A stretch of 60,629 nucleotides of DNA, the filler included, from Basidiobolus meristosporus CBS 931.73 (lineage: Eukaryota; Fungi; Basidiobolomycota): the NCBI GenBank assembly GCA_002104905.1. It is 3 parts of 3 records of this genome, joined end to end, with 100 filler letters (N's around TTAATTAATTAA, not from the genome) between each part and the next. Parts side by side here need not be neighbours in the genome. Positions count along the whole stretch, not along the records: positions 19,375 to 45,110 come from MCFE01000926.1; 2 more parts are not named here. One strand, given 5' to 3'. This document shows positions 19,375 through 45,110 of this stretch, piece by piece (within the stretch, counting starts at the first letter, position 1; each line of letters opens with the position of its first letter). The notes beneath the pieces are model-generated. The model searched no databases. It had not been told where the DNA came from and worked only from the letters and a program-made list of their open reading frames with translations. Position numbers and translations under genes: made by a program.

Positions 19375-21116
19375 TCACCATTTTCTCTCTCCACCATAGC
19401 CTTAAACTACCTGAGCTTAGACAGGGCTTCTTCCTTTCTCTCCATGAAGTAGTCCTGCATGTATCTTGTATAATCATCAATAATAGTGATTAAATACTTC
19501 ATCCCATCTAGGAATAAATTTTGCATAGGTCAACACAGATCTGAGTGATTAGATCTAATATTTCTTGGTTTTGATTAACCCAGAGCTCTTGAACAGTTGT
19601 CTGGCTTGTTTCCCATATATGCAGGCTTTACAGTGCTCCAAATTAGCTGGGGGATCAATTTTTACTCTGTAAATTAGCTAATATTTTATCATTTTGCACA
19701 AATAATCAAGATTGATGTGTCCAAATCTCCTGTGCCAAAGCATTGGGGTTTCTTCATTCAAATTACTTATGCTGGATTCTAGATATGATGTAATATAATT
19801 TGACTTGTATAGATTCTGATCTCTGATACCAAAAACAATATGGGCACCATTTTGATCAGTAATCCTGCATACAGAACTGTCAAAGCTGAAACTGAGTCCT
19901 ACTGCAGTGGCCTTGCTTACAGAGAGTAGGTTCTTGGCTATCTCAGGTAGATAGAGTACTTCTTGAAAGATCAGTGTATAGCTTCCTTCACTGCTTCTAA
20001 GGTTTACTTGGATAGTTCCTTCTCCCACTGCATCAAGTGTTTGATTGTCACCCATGAAAACCTTCTTGATTGGAATTTCTTGAAATTGGGTAAAAAGTTC
20101 TTTTTGGTGTGTAAAGTGTTGAGATGCTCCAGAGTCAATGTACCATGTCTGAGAGTCCTTGTTTAGGGTCATATTAAGTGCAGATATGAATAGTCTATCT
20201 TCAGTTGTTGCAGCATTTCCATATTTAGGCTTTTTCTGCTGACTTTAGCTCTTTTTGAAGCACCAGTCCAATGTGTGTCCTTTCCTGTTACAGTAGTTGC
20301 AAAACTGGTTGCTGTTACCTTTGAAGGCTCTTGAATACCTCCTTAGTTGGTTATCATTGCTTATTAAAGGATTTTCTTCTTCCATCTTATTGGTGCTTGA
20401 TTTTCTTAATTCTTCATCTAGGAGCCATCTATATATGGAATTTAAGGTCAAATTTTCAGTTCTGGACTCTAGGGCTGAAAGAGGGCCCTGAGACTTGTCT
20501 GTCAGGCTATTCAGGATGGTAACTATCACATCCTCATCAGTAGTTGGTATGCCCACAGATTCTGTCACATCCACTAGCAGGGTAGTTCTTTTAATTAGAT
20601 TATTCATTTCTTCTCCTGGCTACATATTTGTAGTAAAAGATTTTTGTCTCAGATACATTTTCTTAGCAGCTGAACATGACTGGTAGGTGTCTTCTAATGC
20701 CTTCCAGGCATTTTTTTCCATTTTGCTCTTGAGCATTTAATTGGCAGTTTGTCTTCAAAATTAATGCAAATGCAGTTGTAGGCACTTTGTTCTTTCTTCT
20801 AGTACTTTAAGGCTACCTCTCCCATGTTTTTAGGAGGGCATTCTTCTCCAATGACAATATCCCAAAGGCCTCTCTCTTGTAGCAGCATCCTCAACTTCAC
20901 CTTCCACACTTGGTAGTTATATCCATCCAACTTATCAGTAGAGGGAAAAGTTTCAGTGATAGCAGTAGTAGACATTGCAGAGAGTGACAGCTTGGGGCTC
21001 ATAGCCTGTTGTCAGAGTCTGAGAAGTATTGGAAGTGATTAGCTGGACAAGTAGATTATGTGGTTTTCACTTGATGAATTATTGACTGTAAAAGTAGTAA
21101 ATATACTTTACATGAT
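19375..21116 (-). mobile_element. Ty1/Copia 5' portion (LTR fragment, PBS, gag, PR, start of IN)
   Basis: LTR fragment 21007-21116 and PBS 20995-21006. Motifs CNYCNRKGHTLDWC, WYIDSGASQHF and LWHRRFGHIN. Homologous to 4707-6690. Confidence 0.9.
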
Positions 21117-21299: not shown

Positions 21300-24200
21300 G
21301 TTTGTATGGTGTTTTGCCAAAGCTGGTATAGCATTGCTGCAGTCTTAGTGTGCTTTACAACTATTTGAGTGGATCTAACAAGCCAGTACATCCAATTGTA
21401 TTATATGGCAAAAAACTTGACAGTGCTTTAACAGCCTCTTTGCAAGCCTTTGATAGCATTATCACAGCAGTATGGTGGCCTACAGCCAGTTCTGCATAAT
21501 GTTACCATACCAATTTACCAAATGGTATTTCCTTTTTCCATCTCCCCTTGTGCAATTCATATATTCCACTGTAGAGTCACCCCTCTTTATTTGTTACCCC
21601 GCTACTACCTTGGGTATTCCACCTATAGTTTGAGTCAAAAAATACTATGGCCTCCTGCGTACTAACCTCTACAAATGCACACACCTGCCGCAATTGACAT
21701 ATTTCTATCACCTCAACTTCATGGCTTTTTATTGCAATGCTTACAATGCTACCATATATCTTGCATTGCTGTCAGCATATACATCTTGCAAACATATGCT
21801 TGGTTGCCACCACTTCTTCCATAAATACCTCCTGTATATCTGCATAGAGCATTTTGGTATTTAGCCAATATATTCCTTTTCCCTGCTGGATTCTAGTCCC
21901 CCTTATAGGTGCATTCTAGCTTTTGTTTGTGTGAACTCTATATTGAATGGTGTAGAAATTGGCTTGTGACCAGGAGAGATCCATCATACCTTGGTAGAGT
22001 TTTCCTAATAAAAACTGGTTGCTTGTTGCTCCCAACCCAATCTTGCATTACTTAACTGATTACCAACGCATTGAGCCTGCATAGCTTCTTAATGACATAG
22101 GTATAGGTGTCTACATGTGCACATCTGTCCTCAGTATATTTCAACTCTAGCTGGCTGTCCTCCATGTGCCAACTCATCACATCCATCACAGACTGGAAGG
22201 TAATATTCTTGATGAGATTAGGATATGGTGGTACCTGCAACTTGACTTGTCTTCCTATCTCCCCACACATCCAATCCATAGGAAACTCCCAAAAGGTGAA
22301 GCAAGGTCCAATATTCTCAACACACCAAGCAAGATGGAGTAGCAAATGGATACAGTAGTGGCAGAGATCTATGTATTCAGCCTTATGTTTGTAGTATAGC
22401 TGCTCAAATCCTGTCACAAACTCTTTGCACAACAGCTGTAGATGTGTCAAGTTGGCACTGGTGATCTGCTTCTGAATAAATATTCCTACAATGTCCACAT
22501 ATGACTCCCAATGCTTCCAATGTACTCTTGGTAAAAATGGCTTCAGAAGTCCACCTGAATAAATACATATCCAGTTCATTCAGTCCTTGCACTTGCATTG
22601 TTGCATATATATGTGAATGTTGATTGGAGCTCATGAGAGGCACTTAGGGTAGCAGATACTCTGTAATATCTTGCCAATTCTTACAAATTTTCTGGTACCT
22701 CAAAGGGCTCATATAGCTTGAAATGCTCCATGTACAACCTAGTCATCAGTAAAGGGATATTGTTGAAAAGCAAATGCATTGCCCCCAGCAGAAAGCTTTT
22801 GCTCCAACAGATACCATCTATCTTGGGTATTCCCAGTTGGCAATTAATTCCATATTCTGGCCAATGGCTGATAGCTTGCCAACTTTGCTGCATTGTATTC
22901 TGACTTCTGTACATTGTCTTTGAGGGAAAATGATGCTCTTGGTGTTGGTGTTTAGATAAAAATAATGTGTGTGGGTTATGGAGTAAGTCCCCTGGATCTC
23001 CCACATTTGACAGCAGTGCTGTCCATTGTGGCCAGAAAAGCCACCTATTGTGCTGATGGCTGGAGTATCTCCAGTGTAGATAATAATATACACTTTTACA
23101 TGATGGCCATTTACTGTTATCCCACTGAAAGCATACAAAATTCATCCAGTAATGGATACAGGTGGTTATCCAGGTTGAACAGTGATTTAGGCCCATATAC
23201 CAGTGAGGCTACTATCAGATTTTGGCTCTGATACTGTAAGATAGATGGCAGATTCAGGTTGATGAGAATCACTGGCCAGCAGGATTTGCTGGTGGAGTAC
23301 TTGTTTAATGAGAATACATCAAGTGCCAAGGCAAAGGCATGGTCACACATACCTTCAAATAGCCCTTGCTTCTTAGCTATTTGTAATGTTTGCCATCAAA
23401 TATGTTGGATATGTTTGTGCTTGATTGATACTGAGTGTGCTACTGTATAGCTTTGCAATATTTGTTGGACTGCATGAGCTTCTTTATATGGGGTATAGCT
23501 GGAATATATCTGGAGTGTGAACAATGCTTTGCCCCAATGATGGTGAATTCCTGACAAGTTGGACACCTTGCAATGGAGAAATTTTCTGATGTGAATGCCA
23601 TGTAACTATTAACACATCCTGGTATCAGGATGGTCTCTGAGTCTTATGTTGCCAGTCACATGATGGTCTTCCACTTATACCATGTACATGGTAGTTGCAT
23701 CCTGTGATGATTTTGGTAAGAAGTGGTAGTAAACACTCAAAGCCCCCATTACTGATATTAGTGGAATTCACCACTTCTCTAGCCACAACATCACATCCTT
23801 CACCAGTAGATGGATAACTGGACTCACTTGATTCTATAAAGTATCATAGGCATTTTTTTCCACAGGTGTTGTCTCATTGCATAATGGGATTTTGCTGGGC
23901 TCATGCAGGGTACTGTTGTTAGGAAAGATAAGCTCACAATCCATCAATGAGCCTGCTCCTACAGAGCTATCACTCTGCAGGCCATATTCAGAAGGCTGAG
24001 GTGAGCCTAAAGGCATCACAAACTCTCCTAACTCAGTATGCACAAGGTGACAAGTACAGCCAGATGCCATTGTAGAAGTATCAAGTGGTCAGCAAGATAT
24101 TGTTGGTACAGTAGTGACTGGTGAGAGGTCAAATATGACTTGTGTGGCAAAACACTGGCTGTGATCCTAGTAATACTTCCTATGCTATATGCATGCTTCA

Positions 24201-26263: not shown

Positions 26264-27960
26264 TAGTACTGCAGCCTGCAGCCAGTTTAGCATAATGCTA
26301 CCATACCTGTTTACCAAATGGTATTTTCTTTTTCTAACTCCCCTTGTGCCATCCATATATTCCACTGTTGAGTCACCCCTCCATATTTGCTTACCCACCA
26401 CTACAATGGGTACTCTGCCTATAGCTTGAGTAAAAAAAACTATTCCTCCTGCTTACTGACCTCCACAAATGTGCACACCTGCTGCAATTGACACACCTTA
26501 ATCACCTCAACTTTAAGGCTTTTTAGTGTGATAATTGCAAAGTAGTCATCTACCGTGTATTGCAGGTGTAATATACATCTTGCAGACATATGCTTGATTA
26601 TCACCACTTTTGCCATGAATACCTCCTGAATATCTGCAAAGAACCCTGTGGTAATTGGCCAATATATTCCTTCTCCCTGTTGGATTCTAGTCCCCACAAT
26701 AGGTGCACTTTAGCACTTGTTTGTGATTTTTGGATTGAATGGTATACAAACTGGCTTGGGATCAACAGAAACCCAGCATACTCTGGTAAAGATGTCCTAA
26801 TCAGAGTTGGCTGCTTGCTGTGTCCAACCCAACCATGCGTAGCTTGACTGATTACCCACAGATTGGGGTTGCTTAGCATCTTAATGCCAAAGGCATAGAG
26901 GGCTCCATGCGCAAATCTGTCCTTAATATTTTCTAACTCTTCCTGGCTGTCCTCCATGTACCACCTAATCACATTCATGACAGACTTGGAGGTAATATTC
27001 TTGATGATATTGGGATATGGTGGCTCTTGCAACTTGACTTGCCTTCCTATCTCCCCACACATCCACATAATAGGAAATTCCCAAAAGGTGAAGCAAGGTT
27101 CAATATTATCCACACAACAAGCAAGATCAAGTAGAGTGTGGATACAGCAGTGGTGGGTTGGTATATAAGCCCAAGGGAGAGATATGTTCAGCACTTCTCA
27201 AGTGTTTTGTGAGTAGGTTGCTCACTGGGTGCAATAGCTTCTGGCAAAAGCTTACTGAGAAAACTTGTGGTCTGTCTCTACTCTAATGTGAAGGGGAATA
27301 AAGCCACTAGCTTGTCAGGGGAAGACTACTGAGCTACCATTCCCAATATAGTTGGCATCTCAACAGATATATGTGCTGGGTCCAGCATCCTTTGGGATGA
27401 CAATGTACTAGAGCTTCCAAGGCCAAAACAACCGTAAGCTCAGCCAGCAGGAACCTGATAAGAATACAGCTGTGATCAACAGTTACAAAAACAGAAAAGC
27501 TTCTATGCCTATAAATGAACAAACTTGGGAGAGAATAAGTATAATAAAAGATACCTACTCTGAGTATTCTTCACAGGTAGTGCCTCCAAGGTCAGTTGGT
27601 TGTCAGTGTGGTGTCCTGGGAGTGTCCTATGGTCTGGGATAGAGAGTACAGGTAGCAGCAGATAGCAATGGTCAAGCTAATCAGCAAGTTGGTATATTGA
27701 TAAAAGGGATGATGAATTATTATTGAGGGATTGCCTGCTGGAAAGCGTACAAAATTCATCCAGCAATGGATATAGGTAGCTGTCCAGGTTCCGTGGAGAT
27801 TCAGGCCTAGATACCAGTGAGACAATCATTAAGTATCTGCTCTGATACTGTAAGATAAGTGACAGATTCAGGTTGATGAGAATCAGTGGCCAGCAAGATT
27901 TTCTGGTAGAGTAATTGTTTAATGAGAATCCATCAAGTGCCAAGGAAAAGTCATGATTAC
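26264..27960 (-). mobile_element. CACTA Tnp2 fragments interrupted by a Gypsy LTR fragment
   Basis: ORFs 26440..26697, 26601..27194 and 27677..27964 are homologous to copy A Tnp2. Confidence 0.75.
27151..27732 (-). repeat. Truncated LTR of the Gypsy-1/2 family
   Basis: Aligns with 14221-14810 (cacttctcaagtg, gatgacaatgtact, gtagtgcctccaaggtcagttgg). Ends approximate. Confidence 0.8.
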
Positions 27961-30117: not shown

Positions 30118-33100
30118 TGTTATGATCTGCTACTTGAATGTATAAGTTAGAACAGTTTTTAGTCAATTCAACTAGTTGTATGTTTAGCCTATTGGTATGT
30201 CAGTATTATCTATCAAATTAGTAGCATTAGTCAGCAAATGAATCAGCAGATCCTTATCAGTTAGAAATAGATATATTAAGTAGGATCTTGTTAAGTTATG
30301 ATGATGCAATCAAATGAGTCTTCAGCTACTGCCTACATTAGAAAATATAACTAGTCAGCAATTAATCTGGCAAAATGTATATAAGGAGCTGCTGGAACCT
30401 CAATAAAGATAAGTTCAGGTTTTAGTGAATACAATACTATCTATACTCCCTATTCCTCTACAACTCTTATACCAAGATTTGTAACATTGGTAGCAGCAAT
30501 AACCAGAAACATCCCTCCTGAAGAAAGAAGAAGCCTCCCTAAAGATGTTCAAAAATCCAGAATGGAAGAATGCTATGCAACAAATCCTGGCCCAGCAGCA
30601 ACAATTACTCCAGATCCTAAGCCAGCAGCAACAAGGAATGAATACCATGGCCCAAAGCCAGCAAAACCTTGTCAAGAGCAACTTTAGTGTGAAGGTCAAC
30701 TGGTACAACAGTAGAGTCAACAAAAACCTGTAAACTTGGCTCTTCCAGATTGAAGAAGCTATCAAGGCTAAAGGATTGCTCCAGAAAGTAAGTTACATTA
30801 TGCAGCCTCTTACCTTACATGTGCAGCTTTACAGTGGTACCACAACAAGATCAGGTCAGCCACCATGATGGGATGCTTTACAATCTCTACCTGTGATGGG
30901 TTTGTGATGGAAATTCAGGATGCCTTTGAGCACCCATGCCAACAGACACTACAAGAAGAAAGTTGAAGACACTCAGACAGAAAGGAATGGTCCAAGGGTT
31001 CATATATGAGTATAGATGTCTACATGGGTAAATTGAAAGAATGGACTCTCTGGATCAAGTTGAATACTTTATTGATGGGTTGAAAGAAAGAACTTGTGAG
31101 GAATGGAATTATCAAAGATCATAGACTATTGAAGAAACCACCAAGATTGCCATTGACTATGACTGAGCAATGTTTGGAGTTGGGAAGCCCACAATGACTA
31201 ATCAGAGAGGCTACAATCACTATGAAAGAAGACAATTAGAAGCAGTGCCAATGGAAATAGATGCTATGCAGAAGAATTCTACCTCAAAAGAATGTAAGAA
31301 GAAAGGACTTTGCTTCAATTGCCACCAGCAAGGATATATTGCAAAGTACTGCCCTCAGAGAAGATATGGACACCAGCCATCAAGAGCCTTTAACCATATT
31401 GAGGCCCTGGAACATAGTAACATGGAGGATACACTTGAAGATGACTCAGAACTCACCTTCAATATGACAGAAGAATACATACGCCAGATGACCTCAAACT
31501 CAGGAAAGCTATTATATTTGAATGGAGTAATCAATGGAGTACCTGCCATGATCATGATTGACCCAGAAGAATCACATGAGTACATGTAAGAGCAATTTGC
31601 TTTGAAAGCTGGAGTCAACTCAGAACCCAGCAAATCAACTTCAGTCTCAACAACTGATGGGAACTCTCAAATAACTAACCATATTACTCAGCCAGCAAGG
31701 GTGAAGATCAATGACTATGAAGAAGACTACAGGCCTATATATTTGGGAACTGCAGGTTTGACCTTGTACTTGGGAAAACCTGGCTATTTTGTTGTAATCC
31801 ATCAACCAACTGGAGAGCTCATGCTACTCAGATCTACAAGGACACCAAGACCAATGAGCTATTACCTGCCAGACTGGATTCTAACTTGGTCAATTCCAGT
31901 GTGCGTAAAACAAGTGAACTTAGCAAGACACAGTTCTGTAGAGTACTAAGAAAAGACTCTTGGATGCTCCTCATGGCAGTATTACAGGAGAATTCCTCTA
32001 CTCCAGTACCCCAGAAGGTCCAGACTCCTTTGAAGGAATAGTCAAACATATTTCTAGATGAACTTGTAAGCCTACCACCCTTCAGAGATGTGGATCATGC
32101 CACTGAAACAGGAGATAGCCCTCCAGTGAGTAAACATCTCACAGAATGAGTCCATTAGAGTTGGAAGAGATGAAGAGACAAATAGATTAGTTACTGGAGC
32201 AAGGATACATCAGACCCAGCAAGTCACCTTTGGGAGCACCATAACTTTTGTGAAGTACTTAGCCATGAGTTTTGGCCTCACCAATGCCACTGTAAAATTC
32301 ATGACCCTGATGCAGACTGTCTTCCAGGAGTCCTTAGACAGGTTTGTGACAATCTACATAAATGATGTATTGATATACAACAAGACAGGAGTGGATCACT
32401 TGTTGCACATTGAAAAGGTCTTGAAGAAGCTAAGAGAGCACAAGCTTTATGGCAAGCTACCCAAGTGTGAATTCTTCAAGGAACACATTAAATATTGGGA
32501 CACATAGTGACTAGCACAGGAGCAACCTTAGACCCTAAGAAGTTTGAAGTTACCAAGAATCTGAAGCAGCCCCATAGCAAATCAGAGCTCATATCATTCC
32601 TTGGAATGTTTCCTATTATCAGAAACTTGTCAAGTCCTTTGCTAGTATTGCAGCCCCTTTAACTGATATCCTCAAGAAAGACAATACCTTCAAGTGGGAC
32701 ATAGCTTGTAAGATTACCTTTCAGATGCTCAAGAATGAACTTGCTAAGCTGCCAGGCTTGAGAATACCGGATTTCAGAAAGGAGTTTACTCTGTGCACAG
32801 ATGCTTCAGATTATGCAATTGGTGGAGTGTTGAGCCAACAACTCAAGCGAAAGGGCTACCCTGTTGCCTTTGGGTCCAAGAAACTGAACTCAGCTGAACA
32901 GAACTATCCAGTTCATGAGAAGGAGATGCTTGCTATAATACACTGTTTGAAGACAAGGGGATGCTATATTGAAGGAGACAAATGTACTGTGAGGACCAAT
33001 CATGCCTCCCTCAAGTATATATTTACTCAGAGGGTACTCTCTAGAAGAATGAAAAGATGGAGTGAATACATTCAGCAATTTGATTTGAAGATTGTCTACT

Positions 33101-34825
33101 GCCCTACAAAAACAACACAGTTGCTGACGTCTTTTTACAATTAGGACAAGTTGCACAACTCAACTTGGTGCATGAATCAGATTGGCCTAGCCTATTACCA
33201 AAGTACTTGGAGGACCAAGCCATTCCTAATGAGGTGGCTGAAGATATCAAAAAGATAATCCATGATAAAGCCAGCAAATTTGTAGTACAGGATAAAACAC
33301 TCTACCAAATTGTTGATGGAAGCCCTATTACCTGTTGCCCTTATGTTGCTTGCCTGGATTTAATTCATACGCTACACAATGGTTATGGAAATCTTGGAAT
33401 TAAAGGAATCTATAGCCTTGTGAAAGCCAGAGCATGGTGGCCCAATATGTAACATGACATTGAGAAGCTAGTGAAAACATGCCCAAATTGCCAAATCAAC
33501 CAAGGCCAACCACAGAGAATTGCTGAACTCTTTCCCTTGGAACCTGTAAAACCATTCAAAAGATGGAGAATTGACTTTATTGGAAGACTGCCAACTACCA
33601 GGAAGTGCAACTGTTGGATCCTAGTAGCAACTGACCATACCACCAAATGGCCAATGGCTAAATCTGTACCTACAGCCAGTAAACCGGAAGTTGCAAGTTT
33701 TATCTACCATCAGATCCTTATGAAGTTTGGTTGGCCTGTAGAGATTCTATCTGATAGAGATGCAAACTTTATGGCAAAGACATTGCAAGCTTACCTGGAA
33801 ATGTAGCAGATCAAACACTTGAAAACCTTGGCATATCATCCCAGAACTAATGGGGTCACTGAACAGTTTTATGGATTATATGGAAAAATGCTGACTAAGT
33901 ATAGAAATGAAGTTGTCAGTAGATGGGATGAGTATATAGACCAAGCACTCTTTGCATGCAGAGTAAGAGTACACAACACCACCCAACAATTGCCATTTTA
34001 CTTAGCATATGGATGTGGACCAAGGATTCCAGGAGATCTCACACAACCAAAGCTTACCAACACCTTAGAAGATGAACTCAGTCAGCCAAGTGGACACCAG
34101 CAACTAGAACAAAGACGTCAAGAGGCACAGACCAAAGTACCTCAAAGTGGAGAAAAGATGAAGCAAAGATTTGATAAGACTATAGCACCAGAAGCATTGA
34201 CAGCTGGGAACTTTGTATTGCTCAGAAACAACACTTGGAAGAAGTATGAGCCCCAATGGAGAGAACCATGCAAGATCATCAGAGAATATCCATTTGCAAC
34301 TTACCAAGTAGTGGACCAACAAAGCAATATCTGGGAAGACTTAGTGCATAGGGACAGACTCAAGCTTACAAGACTTGCTGCTAATACCAAACCAGCAAGA
34401 TATTGGTATCACAAGAAAAGAGATTCAGGAGAACCCTCTCAACTTTGATAGGGGAATGTTATCATCTGCTGCTTGAATGTTTAAGTAAGATCAGTTTTTA
34501 GTCAAATCAATTAGTTGTATGTTTAGCTTATCAGTATATCAGTATTGTCTATCAAATCAGTAGCATTAGCCAGCAAATGAATCAGCAGATCCTTATCAGA
34601 CAGAAACACATATATTGAGTAGGCTCTTATTAGGTGATGATGATGCAATTATATAAGTCATCAGCCACAGCCTATGTTAGGAGGTACACTTAGGCAGCAA
34701 TTGATCTGGCAAACTGTGTATAAGGAGCTGCTGGAACCTCAATCCAGATCAGCTCAAGTTTTAGCAAATACAATACTAGCTAAACTCCCTACTCCTCTAT
34801 AAATCTTAAACCAAGACTTGCAACA
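30118..34825 (+). mobile_element. Ty3/Gypsy element Gypsy-3 (unrelated family), decayed
   Basis: Two 369-bp LTRs (30118-30486 and 34457-34825, TGTTAT...AACA, roughly 84% identical). PBS TGGTAGCAGC at 30488-30497 (tRNA-iMet-like). PPT AGGGGAA before 34457. No TSD. Confidence 0.9.
30545..34448 (+). pseudogene. Gypsy-3 gag-pol remnant
   Basis: CFNCHQQGYIAKYC knuckle, MSFGLTNAT and YINDVLI (RT), TDASDYAIGGVL (RH), IDFIG and YHPRTNGVTE (IN). Stops and an internal RT deletion. Confidence 0.87.
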
Positions 34826-36440: not shown

Positions 36441-36935
36441 TAAGTATTTGAGCAAGCCTAACCAGCTGATACAGAATCACCCAGTTGGTTGATAAGATGG
36501 AAGTTTTGGGCACACTACCTATCAATGAGGATGTGATAGCTCACATCCTGAACAGCCTGAGAGGCAAGTCTCAGGGCCTCTCATCAGCTCTAGAGCTCAG
36601 AGCTGAAGACTTAAATTACATATACAAATGGCTCCTGGCTAAAGCATTAAGAAATTCAAGCACCAAAAAGAAGGAAGGTATTGTGTTAATAACAAGTAAA
36701 AGCCAACAAAGAAGGTACACAAGACACCTTATTGTTAATGGCAGCCTTTTTTGCAACCACTGCCAAAGGAAAGGACACACATCCAACAAGTGCCTCAAGA
36801 AGAGATTTAGCTGGCAAAAAAAACCAAATTATGGAGGTGCTGCAACAATTGAAGCTAGACTACTCAAATATGCACTAAATATGCAACAAATAAGAATACC
36901 CAGATGTTGTTTATTGACTCTGGAGCATCTGAACA

Positions 36936-39900
36936 CTCTATGAAAATTCTTCTGATGATTGCATCAATAGGTCATCATAAGTTCTAGGTCCTGTAACTAA
37001 AAGGTATTGATTTAATCAGGATACCATGCAAGGACCAACAACAAAGAATTGCACCTGAAATATCATAAATAACCCAGGCAAGGTGTTTCATCACAATAAC
37101 ACACAACTGCCATATGACTGGTGCTCTGCCAGTTTTCTCTATTTCTGATCCTGGACACCCTATCACCTCCAATGTTTATGAGCATTGAATGGCTTTTGCC
37201 TCTTTTTGATACTCCCTACTTCCTGACTCAATCATTTCTCTTATTTTGCATGCATAGAAATTGATTTATTTCTGCTGAGACTTCAGTTGTACCCCAATTA
37301 CCTATTGTATTGACCAATACAAGTCCCTATACCCTACACTAGGCCCAATCCCACACTCAACAAGTAACTCCATTAAAATCCACCACTCTATAAGTATTCT
37401 TACTGTTATACTCTGTTTCCACAGATTTAGCGGGAGCACTAAGGCTTTGTGCAATTGTTCATTTGTTGATTCACATTGTCCTGATCAAGCTCCTCATTGG
37501 CTAGTCTTTGCAGTATATCCTTACAACATGTAGGTGTGTTTTCTTGAGCACTGCTCTTGAAGAAGTGCTGCAATCATTTGGTATGCCTACAAGTTTTCCA
37601 ATTCCACTGAAGGCATTGTGATAGTCTTTTGAGCTCTTGACATTGTAGCCTTTAGTGCCAGTGGGATATCTACTCTGTGAACAATGGAGGACATGGAGGC
37701 AATATTGGACAAATTACCTTTCTTGCATACTCATCTACATTGCTGGAGTATAGCTAAGCTGGCTGCACTTCCAACTCTTGTAAAAACAGCTGTTTTCTTG
37801 TTGGTAAATCTTTCTGGCTTTGATGGTATTCAGTCTGTTCTGGGCCTACAGTATAGATTGGCAGGAACAGCAGCTTTTTTCTTACGTTTCTCTTTCACTA
37901 GCTTGGGTAGACTTTTCCCCTTTGCCTTTTCCTTAATCCCTGCCAGGTCTTTCACTGCTACTTTGTTGGAGTGCTTCTTGTATTGAGCCACATTTTCTCC
38001 TTGATAAATGTTGATCAGATACATCTGCTTTGGCCTGCTAGTCCCTTGCTGGCACTCTGCTAGCAGCCTGACACTTCTTTACTGCTTGTTTCAAGCTCTC
38101 AGTGCATGCTGTTACAGGCTCCTGAGGTAGCCACTTGCTATTATCACTGCCAAGTCCTTCATTGCTACTTTGACTGAGTTCTTTTTGAAAAGAACTAAGC
38201 TTTTTACTTGCTAAATATTGGGCTGGTGAATCTGTGACTGCCTGCTTTTCCCTTATTGGCATGTTTCCAGCTACCCAGTGCCTCATTGACACTTGTTTGG
38301 AGCTTTCAGCCCTGCATGCAACAGGCTTTACAGTGAGCCACTGGTTTCTAGCTATTGCACCCTTATTCTTTTGCCATTAATAGTTTCTGCTATTCTTGAG
38401 ATACATTCTTAGCATACCAATGCTGGCCCAAACGCTGTTTGAATGTTTGAATCCAGAATAATGCTCATGGAGCAAGTCACATGCATTCTGCTTGGCCTTG
38501 AGTACCTGACAGTCCACTGGTATGCCAGCCTTGAGGTGTAGGAGTGATAGACTTCTAACAGCCACTTGATTATCAGCCCCCTCTTCATCATTGTGCTCAA
38601 TGGAGCCATACATCTTCAATGCTTTTTGATTTTAGGTTTTGGTATAAGCACTACAACTTCCCCTCTCATGCTGTGATAATTTTTATGTGTACTTTATATT
38701 TGGGCACTGCTGTTGTGCCTCAAAGACTGTATTATGTTCCTGTGCTGTTACATTGGGAAATGGCTAAATTCTTGGCTATGGCATTGAGCTACTTGAGTTC
38801 CTTCTTTGCAGCAAAGATACTGCTTTCTCTACATGGGATATTAAATGCTCTGTACCTTTTGTCTGCCCATCCTATTTTGGGTTTATTTCCTTATTTCTCT
38901 AGTCCATTGCATCTGTCCTATCAGCCACTGCACCTAATTGCCTCATTCATGCTTTGGTATTAGCCAACAACATACTGGCTAATACATGTGGTAGTGATGT
39001 TGTGATTGCCACTTGCTGGTCTTCAACAGCAGGTACTGCTTTGCTACATTCTCATTGGCCTTAGCAATATGGTAAGCTTGTGGTTCTGCAGAGAATACCA
39101 ATTGCCTACTTATTTGCAAGCCTAAGGAGCCCATATTACTCCCTTCAGTAGGCACACTGTCAACATGGCCTTTTTGGCTGTAGCCCTGCTGCTTGCACTG
39201 AATGCAGAGCAAGCTGTTGTCCAACCATTCTTCTGCTGCTGTCAGTGGTGGGGTGTGGTTGAGAAACAGACGGCTTTGCTTTATTTTTTGGCAGCATTTA
39301 TATGGAAGTGAGTCAAACCAAAGGGGATATGGTGTTACCTATATGTGTGTATGTGGTGCCACAACTGTTTTTATAGAGCTCAATGGTGGGTAATCATTGA
39401 ATCTTACATTTATGCAGGTGCAATGTCTCAAACACATGATTGTCTTAAATTATCATGAGTATTGACAGAAAAGTGATATAATAGCATTATGTTGCTAAAT
39501 GTAAAACTGTTTGCCCCAAGGATAAGTCTACCTTGATTCAACACTGCAAGAGAAGAGAAAAAAGACCATGTGGCTATTATAGCAAGCCTCTGAGCCATGA
39601 GGCATGCAGAGAGCATTGGAAGTATTACTGGGATCATGGCCAGTGTTTTGCCACACAAACCATATTTGGCCATTCACTAGTCACTACAATGCTAACAATA
39701 TCTTGCCAGACACTGGATACTTCTGTGATTGCATATGGCTGTACTTGTCACCTTGCACAAACTGATTCAGGAGAGTTTGTGACACCTTTAGGCTCATCCC
39801 AGCTATTTGAATATGGCATGTAGAGTGATAGCTTTGAAAAAGCTGGCTTACCAATGAATTGTGAGCCTATCTTCCCTGACAGCAGCACCTTGCATAAGCC

Positions 39901-41448
39901 TGGCAAAATCCCATTTTGCAAATAGGCTACATCCATGGAAAAAAATGGCAAGGACACTTTATGAAGTCCGGTAAGCCAGCAAATCCATCTACTAGTGAAT
40001 GAGGTGATTTTGTGGCTACAGAAGTGGTGCATTTTGACCAATATTAGTAATGGGGGCTTTGAGGGATTACACTATTTGTTGCTAAAATCATCCTGGATGC
40101 AACTTACCTATAACATGGTGTAGGTGGGAAACTGTCATGTGGCTGGCAACCTATGACCCAGGAACTGTCCTGATACCAGCATTTGCTAACAGTTGCATGG
40201 AACTCATATTAGAAAATGCCACTGTTGCAAGGTGTCCAAATTGTCAGGAATCCATTACCATTGGGGAAACATAGTTGACACTCTAGGTATATTCCAGTAA
40301 TACCCTGTCTAAAGAAGCTCAAGCAATCCGATAAGTATTTTGAAGCTATAAAATGAGCTCCAATTAGTATTCATACGCATATGCAACATTACAACTGCAA
40401 GGACTGGATGAGCTAGATATGTATTCATTCAAGTGGCATTCTAAGGCTGTTTCTACCAGGAGTACATTGGAAGCATTGGGAGTCATATGCGTACATTGTA
40501 GGAATATTTATCCAGAAGCAGATCACCAATGCTAACTTGATCCATCTATAGCTTTTGTGTTCAGAGTTTGTGATGGGATTTAATCTCTTGTACTGCAAAC
40601 ATAAAGCTGAGCACATAGATCCCTGCCGCTGGTGAAGCCATTTACTATGCCATCTTGCTTGGTGTGTTGAGAATATTGGACCTTGCTTCACCTTTTGGGA
40701 GCTACCTATGGAGTAGATATGTGGGAGATAGGAAGACAAGTCAAGTTGCAGGTCCTATCATATCCCAATCTCATCAAGAACATTACCTTCAAGTCTGTCA
40801 TGGATGTGATGAGTTAGTACATGGAGGACAGCCATGAAGAGCTGGAAAATACAGAGGACAATTGTGCACATGGAGATACCTATGCCTACGGCATTAAGAA
40901 ACTAAGTAGCCCCAATGCATTGTTAATCAGTTAAGTAATGCAAAGTTGGGCTGGGTACAACAAGCACTGATTTATACTTACAAAGCTCTACCAAGGTATG
41001 CCAGATTTCTCTTGGTTGCAAGCCAATCTCTACACTGTGCAATACAGAGTTCACACAAACAAGAGCCAGAATGTACCTATAAGGAGACTAGAACTCAGTA
41101 GGGAGAAGGAATGTATTGGCTAAATACCAAAAAGCTCAAAACACTGTCAGGTTTTTTACCACATAAGGCAATTGGATGTACTGGCTGATTAGATCCAATA
41201 AATAGTTGTAGGTGCATTAAGACTGCAACAATGCCATGCCACCCTTAGCAAATCACTGTACAAACACTGTAATGTATTATCAACTGTACTTGACTGTAAA
41301 ATTAGCAGAACACCATGGTGATCCTCTCACAAGATTGTGTAGATGGTCATTAATTCAAAGCTGCCGGTATTATGGTGGTCTCCTGACAGGATTTTCACAG
41401 CTAATCTGAGTTGGATATGCCTGCAGGACCAAATAATTTCTCATAGGG
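36936..41448 (+). mobile_element. CACTA element copy B, about 4.5 kb, inserted in the Copia protease
   Basis: Termini CTCTATGAAAA (36936) and TTTCTCATAGGG (41448). AACA is duplicated on both flanks. ORF2 remnant on minus and Tnp2 remnant on plus with an internal deletion. Confidence 0.82.
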
Positions 41449-42373
41449 AACACCATACACACCAAAAAGAACTCTTTAACCTATTTCAAGCAATTCCATT
41501 TAAGAAGGATTTCATGGGTGACATTAGGGCACTTGATGCAGTAGGAGTAGGCATTATCTAAGTAAGCCTTTGAAAAGGTGAAGGAAGCCACACGCCTACT
41601 TTAAAAGAAAAACTCTATGTAAAAGATAATAGACTTGTTCCATCATAACATGCCAGGGTGCGCGGCGCAATCCGCGGTTGCTAAGAACGATTGGGCGCGA
41701 TGTTATAGCTACCAGAAGGCAGGATTGTTCTTGGACGATTTTGCACTATGCGGGACGATCTCGCACACTATGGCACAATCTGACACAATGAGGTTGGCGC
41801 GGATGATTGCGCCAACTCGTAATGCTCGCATCACGTGCGCAATCGGATACCGCTATAATGGCAGGTAAAATCCGGTATTTGGATATGTTTCTTTAATGTA
41901 AATGGAAATAAATGTGTATCACACTATAAACTATACTGATACTTACCATTTTGGTTACCCTCACTCCAATTGGACGGTATCTCAGTGGTTAATTGGTCCA
42001 AAAGTATCCTGAAGCTGGCAGCCCCCAATTGGCTCAATGACTACAGAAAAAGCTACCTGATTTGCCATCAAATATCCCATTTTGCCCATTGAGCAAGTAA
42101 ATCCCTGATCCTAGTGATTGAGCAAGGTGTCATAGCTAGCACGCAAGCGATCGTGTAGGTGCGAAACAGATCCAATAGCTGCACTGGTATTACAGATGAT
42201 GTATATATATGCAGGGTGTTTATTTATAGGGGTTCTGTCTCAAATGTAAGACGACCTTGATATTACTTATATCAAAAATTTGATGATCACTGATTTGCAA
42301 TGGCTTGATTTGGATCGCAAAAAAAAAGGGTTGTCAGGATCATTACGAATGTGAGCGATTCAAAGCAATCGCA

Positions 42374-43630
42374 TCATCTTCTCCTGGGTTTTTTTCTCAC
42401 AGGGATTACTACTGAAGCATTTGGTAGTGACTCACTTTGCACACCTATACTACTTCCTGGCTGACTATCATCTTGGCTACTTGTGTATTCGTAGTCAGTA
42501 TTTTGCCTCCTAGTTGATGAGTGCAATGCTGCAGCTTGGCCGCGCTGAATCGCTCCGACTGAACCAACTGAACCAACTGAACCAGCCTGTAGTGCCACAC
42601 GCTGACGCGTTCTTTTACTTGCCAAGGGCTCCGGTGGTTGAGTCACTTCATGTTGGTCATCATCAGTCAGTTCACCAGAAGTAACTTGCTGATGGTCAGG
42701 CAAAACGGCACGCACAGGCACGCCTTGACGCGTTGAGATGGCCCTTGGCTGAGTTCGATGTGATGCCGCATGTTGACGCGACTCAGTCCGCTCCAATGGA
42801 CTTGTGTCTAAATGAGCAGTTTGGCGAGTTCTGGTAGTTTTGCTCTGAAGCGCGCGCGTTGACTCAATGCGTGTTGACTCGACGCGGGGCGTTCTGGTAA
42901 AGGGTGTTGGCGTACTCTGGACTGACGTGCGCCGGCGTGCTGTGGTTGCAAGAGATGGTAGGGAATCCAGCGAGGCGTGCTGGCGCGATCTGGACGATGT
43001 TGCTCGCGGTCTGTATTCTTCCTCCTGAAGCTCACCATCTGATTCCTCAAGGTATTCACTTACCCTCTGTCTGATACTTTGGAGCTGTTGCCTGGATGAG
43101 TCCTGTGTATATTGCTCTCGGAAGCCACTTAGCTCTACTAATATATCACGTAGTACATTAGTCATTTGAGGCAAAAACTCATTCAAAATCTCTTTGGTTC
43201 CCAAAGTTGAGGCACGAACGGACGCGTCCGGCCCGTACTGTGCAAATTGCGCGCGAAATTGTTCCCACGCGGCTTCCTTGTCAAATCCCCTCACTCTCAG
43301 CTCATTCTTGATTTCAATACTTGTCTTGTTATATATCTTTTTACATACATTGGCTGGCATCTTGATGTAGAACTCATGCCACAGCTTTCTACTCCAATTC
43401 TTCCATCTTTGTCAACTCTCTGAGGTATCTAGTTCTGCTAGATTAATCAGTAGTGCCCAAATATCTGTATGAAGGCTCATCATAGACACTTGGGCCATAC
43501 TAAAATCATTTGGCAAGAACTCAAACGGATCCAACATCGACTTTTCCGGTCCGGACCGCGCTTGTGAGCTGGGGGATGGGTTTTGTCTGGGTTGTACTAA
43601 AGATGAGTTGAGGCTTGGTATGGGGACCAT
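42374..43630 (-). CDS. Harbinger accessory ORF1, unknown function; ORFs 43412..43630 and 42374..43360 are one frame separated by a single TGA
   Basis: 43630-43360 = 270 nt, so both are in the same frame. The junction reads ...DTSES*QRWKNWSRKLWHEFYIKMPANV. The C-terminal half is R/S/T/Q-rich and ends in a basic NLS-like PVRKKPRRR. Its position matches the second gene of PIF/Harbinger elements. Confidence 0.7.
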
Positions 43631-43989
43631 AGCAACGGATTTGGATACTTATACAGCAGTATATTGGCATCAACCTGGTCTTATATGAAATATATATGAA
43701 AACTAATGTGATTGTTGAATTTTCCATATATTATGCATGATGCATCTCGGATTGCGTTGACACGGATAAGATCACATCAATCGCAGATTTCCTTTTTGAT
43801 TATAGACCTATGATTAAAGCATCAATAAAAGTACCAAGGCATTGTTTGCGGATGATTTTTGCGACATAATGATGGGATACATGGCAATTGATGGAGATTT
43901 AACCATAATGTGTAAAAAATCAGATAAATATTGCAGATTGCGCTGAATCGATTCAAACCGCCTCCATACGATCATCCATCAATTTTAAT

Positions 43990-44874
43990 ATGACTTACTC
44001 ATCTGAATGGTCTTTTCTCATCAATCCCATCACTACCACTGGATTTCCTTTTGACACACTGGAGGAGATCTATTCCAAGTACTGTGGACCATCAACCCCA
44101 ATCTACTCAAGGAGATCTCTTGTTAAGCTTCTCTGCTATTACAAGAACTATTGCCCCACAAGGTTTCATCCCACCATCCATGGCAACAAAAGTCCTAGAA
44201 GCTTTCATTCCCAGCTGACAGCAATGGAGAACCACCTTGCAGAGGGTATGAATGACTTAGAGCAAGCTTGGAATACTAGGTTCAGAAGCTCCAATAGACT
44301 TCCATATCCCAGAGTGTTCAGCAACAGGTTCCATATAAGGAGTATTTTGGATACCTTCCCAGTGAGGATTAACAGACCTTCTAGAGGGCAGAGGCACTTT
44401 TATTCTGGCAAGTACAAGGCACACTGTGTGAAGTTTCAAGCACTGTCTGACATTGAGGGTAACATCATCTGGTTTAGTGGGCCATTTGCTGGAAGTAGGC
44501 ATGACAAAGCACTCTGGGTAGAGAATCATCCTGAATTCAGTAGAGGGGAGAAATGTATGGCAGACTTGGCCTATATAGGAGAGGATTGTCAGAGATTAGG
44601 ATGTATTACAGCTTATAGGAAGCCAAGGAATGGTGTGCTTAGCAGGAAGCAGAAGCTCTACAATAAGATATTTAATCATTTCAGAGTAAGGGTAGAGCAC
44701 ACATTTGGATATCTGAAGAGATTCAGCATATTGGCAGGTAAATACAGAGGAAAGTCATATATAGGAGAAAACAGCAGAATAGGTAAAATAGTTAAGATAC
44801 TTATCAATGCACAGTATGTTCATACAAGAAGACATCCACTGAGAGAAATGTGTCTGGAGCATTATGAAGAGTAA
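43990..44874 (+). CDS. DDE transposase, PIF/Harbinger/IS5-like (DDE_Tnp_4-type), 294 aa
   Basis: ILDTFPVRINRP, YSGKYKAHCVK, GPFAGSRHD, MADLAYIG and RVRVEHTFGYLKRF are the catalytic motifs of this family. ORF intact. Confidence 0.93.
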   Translation: MTYSSEWSFLINPITTTGFPFDTLEEIYSKYCGPSTPIYSRRSLVKLLCYYKNYCPTRFHPTIHGNKSPRSFHSQLTAMENHLAEGMNDLEQAWNTRFRSSNRLPYPRVFSNRFHIRSILDTFPVRINRPSRGQRHFYSGKYKAHCVKFQALSDIEGNIIWFSGPFAGSRHDKALWVENHPEFSRGEKCMADLAYIGEDCQRLGCITAYRKPRNGVLSRKQKLYNKIFNHFRVRVEHTFGYLKRFSILAGKYRGKSYIGENSRIGKIVKILINAQYVHTRRHPLREMCLEHYEE

Positions 44875-45110
44875 ATAAAGCAAGGAAAGCACTATTCTGA
44901 GCAACATAAGTAAGATTGAGTAAAATTACCAGTAACTGTATCATACCACTGGTATCATGGTAGAAATTATAGTGCCAGATGGTGCCGTAGAGTGCCAGAT
45001 CGATCCGGCACTATAAACCGGCTGGCACTATGTGGCACTATCCAACGGAACAAGTCTATTGCAAAGAATCTACTGTTGGTAAGCAAGGCAACTGTTGAAG
45101 GTCTCATTTT

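Follow-up and report, generated by a model that had tools for sequence, protein, structure and literature searches.

The DNA analysed here is a window of 60,629 nucleotides (nt) from the fungus Basidiobolus meristosporus CBS 931.73, of which the piece at positions 19375-45110 carries, close to its right end, a PIF/Harbinger-like DNA transposon. The transposase gene of this element, an open reading frame (ORF) of 885 nt at 43990-44874(+), has a GC content of 41.8% and contains no CG dinucleotide at all, against 38.4 expected from its base composition, while the element outside the CpG-free run contains 108 CG in 2419 nt (observed-to-expected ratio, o/e, 0.88). The explanation that we tentatively prefer, giving it a little less than an even chance, is that selection keeps the transposase frame free of CpG, since CpGs there invite methylation, silencing or lethal hypermutation.

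CpG content of the transposase frame and of the rest of the element

The lack of CpG in this frame was first noticed by eye in a sequence-only reading, with an estimate of 35-40 expected dinucleotides, and counting bears it out: the run proposed there, 43971-44985, is exact. It comprises 1015 nt, namely a leader of 19 nt, the ORF and about 110 nt past the stop codon, and is bounded by the CG at 43969-43970, the last one upstream, 20 nt before the ATG, and by the next one at 44986-44987. The same reading placed dense CpGs up to 20 nt before the start codon, in the second gene of the element (ORF1, 42374-43630(-), divergent from the transposase gene) and at both subterminal regions; we found an o/e of 0.94 at the left end, 0.88 in ORF1, 0.71 in the intergenic region and 0.61 at the right end. 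At the CpG rate of the rest of the element, the probability of finding none in the transposase ORF is ~2e-15. Among the 16 dinucleotides CpG is the only one absent from this ORF, GpC being present in normal number (35), and all 28 arginine codons are AGA (16) or AGG (12), with no CGN. The exclusive use of AGA and AGG (AGR) had also been regarded as a peculiarity of the transposase, which proved not to be so, as the ORFs of the dead transposable elements (TEs) that flank it contain 88 AGR vs. 3 CGN arginine codons. There is no host gene within the piece, although the earlier reading had assumed neighbouring host genes with a free use of CGN, and all neighbours of the element are dead TEs. In the 22 kb of flank outside the element, made up of Copia, Gypsy and other TE relics, the CpG o/e is 0.05, with TpG and CpA at 1.4, and five CG-free runs are longer than that of the transposase. 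The contrast described here is thus one between the transposase ORF and the rest of its own element, and not one between this ORF and the genome.

The pattern of codon usage indicates that the avoidance targets the CpG dinucleotide and goes beyond arginine codons alone. When the synonymous codons of the transposase ORF were shuffled with its own codon usage kept, the shuffled sequences contained 11.7 CpG on average, and not one of 2000 trials yielded zero. The ORF has 54 NCN codons, none of them NCG, and none of its 64 C-ending codons stands before a G-starting codon (13.9 expected); in the related ORF of contig L001, described below, the relevant number is 0 of 58. With the window ORF and that of L003, a further related contig, pooled, T is the last base of all 27 two-fold pyrimidine codons that precede G, and C is the last base of none of the 49 four-fold codons in this position. 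A bias of this kind at codon junctions before G is absent from ORF1 and from four relatives. In ORF1, there are 14 C|G junctions vs. 16.7 expected, 19 NCG codons, and 21 CGN and 17 AGR among its 38 arginine codons. As CGN is used for 21 of the 38 arginines in a gene of the same element, the pattern does not stem from a simple preference of the host for certain codons or tRNAs; this possibility is ruled out by the CGN usage, the C|G junctions and the NCG codons of ORF1 together. The third bases of codons preceding G are spread to A, T and G roughly proportionally, which does not separate mutation from selection, and the TG o/e of 1.02 and CA o/e of 1.52 of the transposase ORF, considered as a possible signature of deamination, are similar to those of CpG-normal relatives.

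Relatives of the transposase and the age of the CpG-free state

The transposase frame is open over 294 codons and matches the Pfam family DDE_Tnp_4 (PF13359, E 4.3e-24, residues 120-271). Its catalytic residues D121, D192 and E236 are invariant in an alignment of 12 sequences (the window transposase and 11 homologues), in line with the earlier statement that both the frame and the catalytic motifs are intact. The protein is compact, of about 290 aa, and no N-terminal helix-turn-helix (HTH) was detected in it. An exact protein look-up returned no identical record. A word-index protein search found three relatives and the remaining ones come from an exhaustive protein search, in which 1756 homologues were retrieved at E<=1e-3. 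The nearest clusters in the Atlas are for the most part labelled Bacillariophyta, a weak lead as to taxonomy. Certain distant relatives (P0010, P0011, P0012 and P0002, the last one encoded by L011 412-1551) have a C-terminal extension of about 80-90 aa that the window transposase does not have. In P0012, this extension has a match to the Chromo domain (PF00385), a hint that insertion is directed to chromatin in the lineages bearing it.

The closest relatives of the window transposase form the cluster P0001/P0152, of 63% amino acid identity, which is encoded by short contigs from four other samples (L001, L003, L004 and L005). The ORFs of this sister subfamily contain one CpG in L001 and none in L003, L004 and L005, where 36 would be expected, and 25 AGR vs. 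1, 0, 0 and 0 CGN arginine codons, respectively. As in the window, the sequences around these ORFs contain CpGs: there are 24 in the 667 nt upstream of the L003 ORF (o/e 0.96), the last of them 16 nt before the ATG, and the L001 ORF is preceded by 187 nt with 5 CpGs and followed by 178 nt with 4. The boundary of the CpG-free state, placed at the start codon in the earlier reading, thus lies 16-20 nt before the ATG in both subfamilies, the upstream sequences of which otherwise barely align. The CpG-containing end repeats and a CGATCA motif about 20 nt before the ATG are kept between the window and L001.

The two subfamilies are deeply diverged, with dN of 0.28 and dS saturated and not computable. 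At their conserved arginine positions AGA and AGG interchange, and CGN never appears, which at saturated dS means that the pressure is ongoing in both lineages. Within the sister subfamily the dN/dS ratio is 0.012/0.14 (~0.09), a value that indicates purifying selection on the transposase protein, as judged from the sequences compared. Such selection excludes the recent passive decay of a dead copy as the source of the CpG-free frame.

Homologues equally free of CpG and using only AGR would have spoken against a recoding particular to this transposase. What we found in seven relatives of 34-43% identity (L002 and L006-L011), taken irrespective of the methylation status of their hosts, is a CpG o/e of 0.83-1.5 and 12-30 CGN arginine codons in each, CGN being the prevailing arginine codon type. 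Since the sister subfamily is CpG-free and the more distant relatives are CpG-normal, the CpG-free state is derived, long maintained and limited to the ORF; on comparison of these sequences, it is a trait of one clade that has been kept longer than synonymous sites retain memory. No further members of this clade were found in our metagenome scans.

The finding of the same layout on independent contigs from four other samples bears also on the possibility that recombination or misassembly brought a decayed, CpG-free transposase module together with fresh ends, or that the pattern arose by chance. Misassembly is a risk in a family as highly repetitive as this one is in the source runs. Nevertheless, a passively decayed module would lose its open frame, the invariant DDE triad and the low dN/dS ratio, the N-terminus of ORF1 and the transposase are similarly diverged between the subfamilies, and chance is excluded by the probability given above. 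We consider this explanation hardly credible.

Comparison of the two subfamilies is similarly informative on a compositional bias of the whole host. According to such a scenario, all host genes would be CpG-depleted and AGR-using, the transposase gene would have drifted to the same composition, and ORF1 and the ends would be exceptions, as fast-evolving sequence or binding sites. The low CpG o/e and the AGR usage of the flanking TE relics agree with it, and so does the conservation, as motifs, of the end repeats in which CpGs are retained. However, the flank consists entirely of dead TEs and is uninformative on host genes. Moreover, ORF1 and 1.4 kb of non-coding sequence remain at the expectation for unmethylated, neutrally evolving DNA (o/e 0.7-0.94) in two subfamilies, whereas a general pressure would erode them, and the complete lack of CpG at 64 and 58 codon junctions exceeds ordinary codon bias. 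A host-wide bias is in our opinion improbable.

Decay of the copies and the maintenance of the CpG-free frame

Contigs of two source DNA sequencing runs were matched to the element; depth in these runs is the summed contig depth and was not used as copy number. About 24,500 contigs matched at >=80% identity and about 6,400 at >=99%, numbers that point to a highly abundant family with recent activity. Of the approximately 237 variant places in these contigs, 149 are C>T or G>A. Among the 40 best-supported ones, 38 are in 41862-43849 and two in the transposase ORF. Many contigs of the family switch at 42050 and 42700, within the left region and ORF1, to another, mutually consistent sequence, which is indicative of one or more subfamilies in which an internal segment is replaced.

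In the sister subfamily, the 5' flanks of L003 and L004 differ at 9 of 26 CpG-site columns vs. 10 of 268 other columns, while their transposase ORFs differ at 1 of 885 columns; in comparing the last two values it should be taken into account that some columns counted as non-CpG were CpGs formerly and that the contigs come from different samples. The sole CpG of the L001 ORF, in an arginine codon (CGC), corresponds to CAT (His) in L003-L005, and a CpG within the frame is therefore a liability. Judging from these sequence comparisons, it is chiefly at CpGs that the copies decay, and sites of this kind are absent from the transposase frame. The copy in the window may itself serve as an illustration. 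Its transposase is intact and its ORF1 is broken by an in-frame TGA at 43412-43414(-), where the L003 homologue reads through with AGA (Arg); if the ancestral codon was CGA, this would be a nonsense change of the CpG type. Thousands of copies of at least 99% identity still carry CpGs.

A mechanism that could lead to such a state starts from the loss of CpGs in the transposon copies of this host, which proceeds much more rapidly than change at their other sites. The losses would be supplied by hypermutation of CpG to TpG or CpA, most likely through deamination of 5-methylcytosine, which would be the link to methylation. Purifying selection would let pass only synonymous or conservative routes, i.e., CGN to AGR, NCG to NCH, and NNC|G to NNT|G, NNA|G or NNG|G. 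The end state would be held by selection, as CG methylation has no substrate in a frame devoid of CpG and decay finds no target there, and the robustness of a trans-acting gene to mutation across thousands of copies would be an added benefit. Such a history may have resulted in a two-compartment design, which we regard as possible although we would not wager on it: a transposase gene purged of CpG and immune to CG methylation and CpG hypermutation, so that thousands of decaying copies keep an intact transposase, combined with ends, a promoter and ORF1 that are like CpG islands. We infer that the hypermutation is caused by methylation, and that the CpG-free state is maintained by selection and not by methylation restricted to the ORF.

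In its favour, selection has the lack of CpG erosion elsewhere in the element in propagating copies. Furthermore, the boundary follows the ORF in two subfamilies, and thus selection on the coding unit fits better than a chromatin domain. The earlier proposal of a recoding by long-term mutation and selection is upheld as far as the change is CpG-specific, confined to the ORF, old (63% amino acid identity to the sister subfamily and saturated dS) and accompanied by a dN/dS ratio of 0.09. The part of it that concerns adaptive evasion of silencing stays conjectural, as gene-body methylation would give the same pattern.

Indeed, methylation limited to a region is the most serious of the competing explanations. 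If only the transposase gene body were CG-methylated in propagating copies, with the promoter, ORF1 and the ends left unmethylated in the manner of a CpG island, its CpGs would decay passively under protein constraint, and the CpG-free frame would be a by-product and not a strategy. The CpG level of the ORF equals that of the methylation-decayed background (o/e 0 vs. 0.05), and the CpG mentioned above was mutated to CpA in the sister copies despite the change of arginine to histidine. The GC content of the ORF (42%) is below that of ORF1 (50%), as expected after C>T and G>A loss. A CpG-rich promoter followed by a CpG-poor body resembles, as is generally known, genes of globally methylated genomes, and the extension of the run by about 110 nt past the stop codon suggests a transcript unit rather than codons alone. 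On the other hand, the absence of CpG from this 3' stretch is not significant alone (~2.3 expected). The explanation requires a boundary fixed 16-20 nt from the ATG in two deeply diverged subfamilies, although the initial few hundred bases of a gene are, as is generally known, usually free of gene-body methylation. ORF1 has an o/e of 0.88 despite being transcribed as well, and in decayed copies the loss hits the flanks too. Taking both sides into account, we find region-limited methylation rather unlikely, but to be reckoned with.

The position of the run relative to the transcript is relevant also to selection at the RNA level, in which the transposase mRNA would avoid CpG owing to a CpG-RNA sensor of the host, similar to ZAP, or to another transcript constraint. 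In agreement with this, the CpG-free run of both subfamilies includes, besides the ORF, the short leader and about 110 nt on the 3' side. However, the evidence from the untranslated regions (UTRs) is weak, the element has a second transcript, that of ORF1, which is rich in CpG, and we know of no such sensor outside animals. We consider this explanation very improbable.

Several points weigh against selection for a CpG-free frame. Both the link to 5-methylcytosine and the adaptive step are deductions from sequence. The zero CpG count of the ORF is statistically indistinguishable from the dead-TE background with its o/e of 0.05 (P(0)=0.15). The sister subfamily may derive from the same or a closely related host, and hence may provide no independent host background. 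The o/e of ~0.9 in ORF1 and the ends implies that propagating copies are not methylated, in which case the mutational cost of a CpG in the transposase would be small within the lineage and selection for its removal weak; this objection would be lifted if the whole family benefits, in that older copies provide transposase acting in trans, or if the benefit is exerted through silencing. The promoter retains CpGs, and consequently the whole element would not be methylation-proof. Finally, ORF1 is presumably needed and also trans-acting, yet it is CpG-rich, which leaves the recoding of one gene only unexplained; neither selection nor gene-body methylation explains this well.

Structure, insertion and significance of the element

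The element belongs to a PIF/Harbinger-like family of DNA transposons with a very high copy number, and is a young copy located inside an older, CpG-depleted Copia relic. The left flank (41343-41627(+)) is a CpG-decayed remnant of Copia pol that hosts the insertion, and the right flank (45061-45110(+)) is the same remnant continued. Both align colinearly to a paralogous Copia fragment at 19375-20172(-), 21 kb upstream, which matches Pol_BBD and gag_pre-integrs. With the element and one 3-nt unit removed, the flanks rejoin gap-free at the junction on this paralogue, and the element was therefore inserted into a Copia relic with a 3-bp duplication. The left target-site duplication is AAT (41628-41630), which in the Copia alignment is present as a single 3-nt unit at the junction, and the right one is ATT (45058-45060), with one mismatch between them. 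As both Copia fragments are nearly devoid of CpG, the insertion is younger than most of the Copia decay.

A repeat search identified the left terminal inverted repeat (TIR) as 14 nt at 41628-41641(+), 100% complementary to 45047-45060, 11 nt of which (41631-41641) lie inside the duplication; at the right end (45047-45060(-)), the TIR at 45047-45057 is followed by the duplicated ATT. The summed depth of the source-run contigs rises stepwise at the left TIR, and these contigs branch into unrelated sequence after 45058-45061. The left subterminal region (41642-42373) is non-coding and contains one or two GCACTAT end motifs (the CpG o/e of the left end given above refers to 41628-42373). The right subterminal region (44969-45046) consists of CpG-containing repeats of ATAGTGCC and GGCACTAT units, identified by repeat search, motif positions and alignment to L001, and is kept in the sister subfamily; at the left end, one or two of these units are present. 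The intergenic region between the divergent genes (43631-43989) contains 11 CpGs, the last of them, at 43969, within the CGATCA motif common to the sister subfamily, and is presumed to be a bidirectional promoter.

ORF1 occupies about 403 codons in one frame and, owing to the TGA, consists of two same-frame pieces, 43630-43415(-) and 43411-42374(-), of 72 aa and 328 aa. Its N-terminal part is conserved in L003. ORF1 gave no Pfam family, no word-search homologue and no Atlas match, no Myb/SANT domain was detected in it by these three means, and it shows no likeness to the partner ORF of L007. A single-sequence AlphaFold model of ORF1 is all-helical but poor, with a predicted local distance difference test (pLDDT) score of 55. 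With ORF1 interrupted, the window copy lacks the full set of open genes that marks an autonomous element; a product of 328 aa from the downstream ATG is possible, and the copy may depend on the ORF1 protein from other copies. We considered also whether the ORF1 protein could be a VANC-like shield of motif-bearing regions against methylation, an idea that found no support, as GCACTAT occurs only at the two ends and not across ORF1.

Elements of the PIF/Harbinger superfamily have two genes, encoding a DDE_Tnp_4 transposase and a Myb/SANT-like DNA-binding protein, and generate a 3-bp duplication, classically of TWA. The transposase type, the DDE triad, the TIRs and the 3-bp duplication thus make the window element fit this superfamily, and so do its repeated subterminal motifs and its second gene; the divergent order of two genes occurs also in the relatives L003, L006, L007 and L010. 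It differs in the compactness of its transposase and the lack of a detected HTH, in an ORF1 with no detectable Myb/SANT domain, and in its target, A(A/T)T and not TWA. We are not aware of any description of a transposase frame without CpG in this superfamily, and a full-text literature search found no prior report of one.

Apart from the Copia fragments at the insertion, the piece contains other repeats. An ORF similar to Copia gag is located at 36485-36943(+); it has no Pfam match of its own and by eye resembles the Retrotran_gag_2 ORF at 20245-20607(-), which brings the number of Copia-derived fragments to at least three in 25 kb. A Gypsy-type remnant with RT_RNaseH and rve integrase (31170-34448(+)) comprises several broken ORFs with almost no CpG, and the closest proteins in a search with its integrase are all metagenome sequences. 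Two paralogous ORFs, 22052-22579(-) and 26601-27194(-), of 175 and 197 aa, share the stretch …CFTFWEFP..WMCGEIGRQVKLQ.PPYPN.IKNIT… and match no Pfam family; a repeated element of unclassified type is their probable source.

The nearest described precedent for a TE module devoid of methylation sites is ONSEN, a retrotransposon whose long terminal repeat (LTR) promoter of ~440 bp is free of CG and CHG and whose methylation state was measured (PMC3907296). In both cases, one functional module of a TE has no symmetric methylation sites, and maintenance methylation would have no substrate there; the absence of CpG is complete in the 1015 nt of the window element, and the sister ORFs have none or one. 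In contrast to ONSEN, the module described here is a 0.9-kb coding frame of a DNA transposon, the promoter of which keeps its CpGs, and it is known from sequence alone. That the host methylates CpG in TE copies is suggested indirectly, by the o/e of 0.05 in the flank and by the predominance of C>T and G>A in the variation between copies.

In globally CpG-methylated genomes, CpG-island promoters are combined with CpG-depleted, methylated gene bodies, usually of o/e 0.2-0.3, and AGR-rich arginine usage is a known correlate of CpG loss. The window element is similar in having a CpG-normal, presumably bidirectional promoter region beside a CpG-poor transcribed body. However, its depletion is total and begins at the start codon, ORF1 and both ends (2.3 kb) are CpG-normal, and the unit is a mobile element and not a host gene. 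RNA viruses and retroviruses suppress CpG and thereby evade the vertebrate CpG-RNA sensor ZAP, and engineered CpG-free transgenes resist silencing. There too, CpG is removed from the coding sequence of a parasite or transgene by synonymous recoding with function preserved, although the selective agent is an RNA sensor or the silencing of transgenes in mammals. In some fungi, repeats undergo repeat-induced point mutation (RIP) or RIP-like hypermutation targeted to CpG. Copies of the window family differ mainly by C>T and G>A at CpG, and a frame with no target sites would be immune to such a process, but the retention of CpGs in thousands of copies of at least 99% identity argues against efficient RIP.

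Hosts silence and erode transposons by cytosine methylation, and the counter-measures known from transposons include anti-silencing proteins and promoters with no methylation sites. A counter-defence located in the synonymous sites of a transposase is, as far as we know, undescribed for eukaryotic DNA transposons. If the frame described here is indeed kept CpG-free by selection, the arms race over methylation and mutation can be fought at synonymous sites, and selection among transposon families can favour a trans-acting gene that is robust to mutation. If, instead, methylation restricted to the gene body is true, the element would be a sharp reporter of the methylation boundaries of its host. 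The element is also a natural experiment, in which compartments with and without hypermutable sites are contained in one unit, of the same copy age and at the same genomic sites. The two compartments allow one to measure the rates of methylation-driven decay and to learn which genes of TEs survive in heavily methylating genomes.

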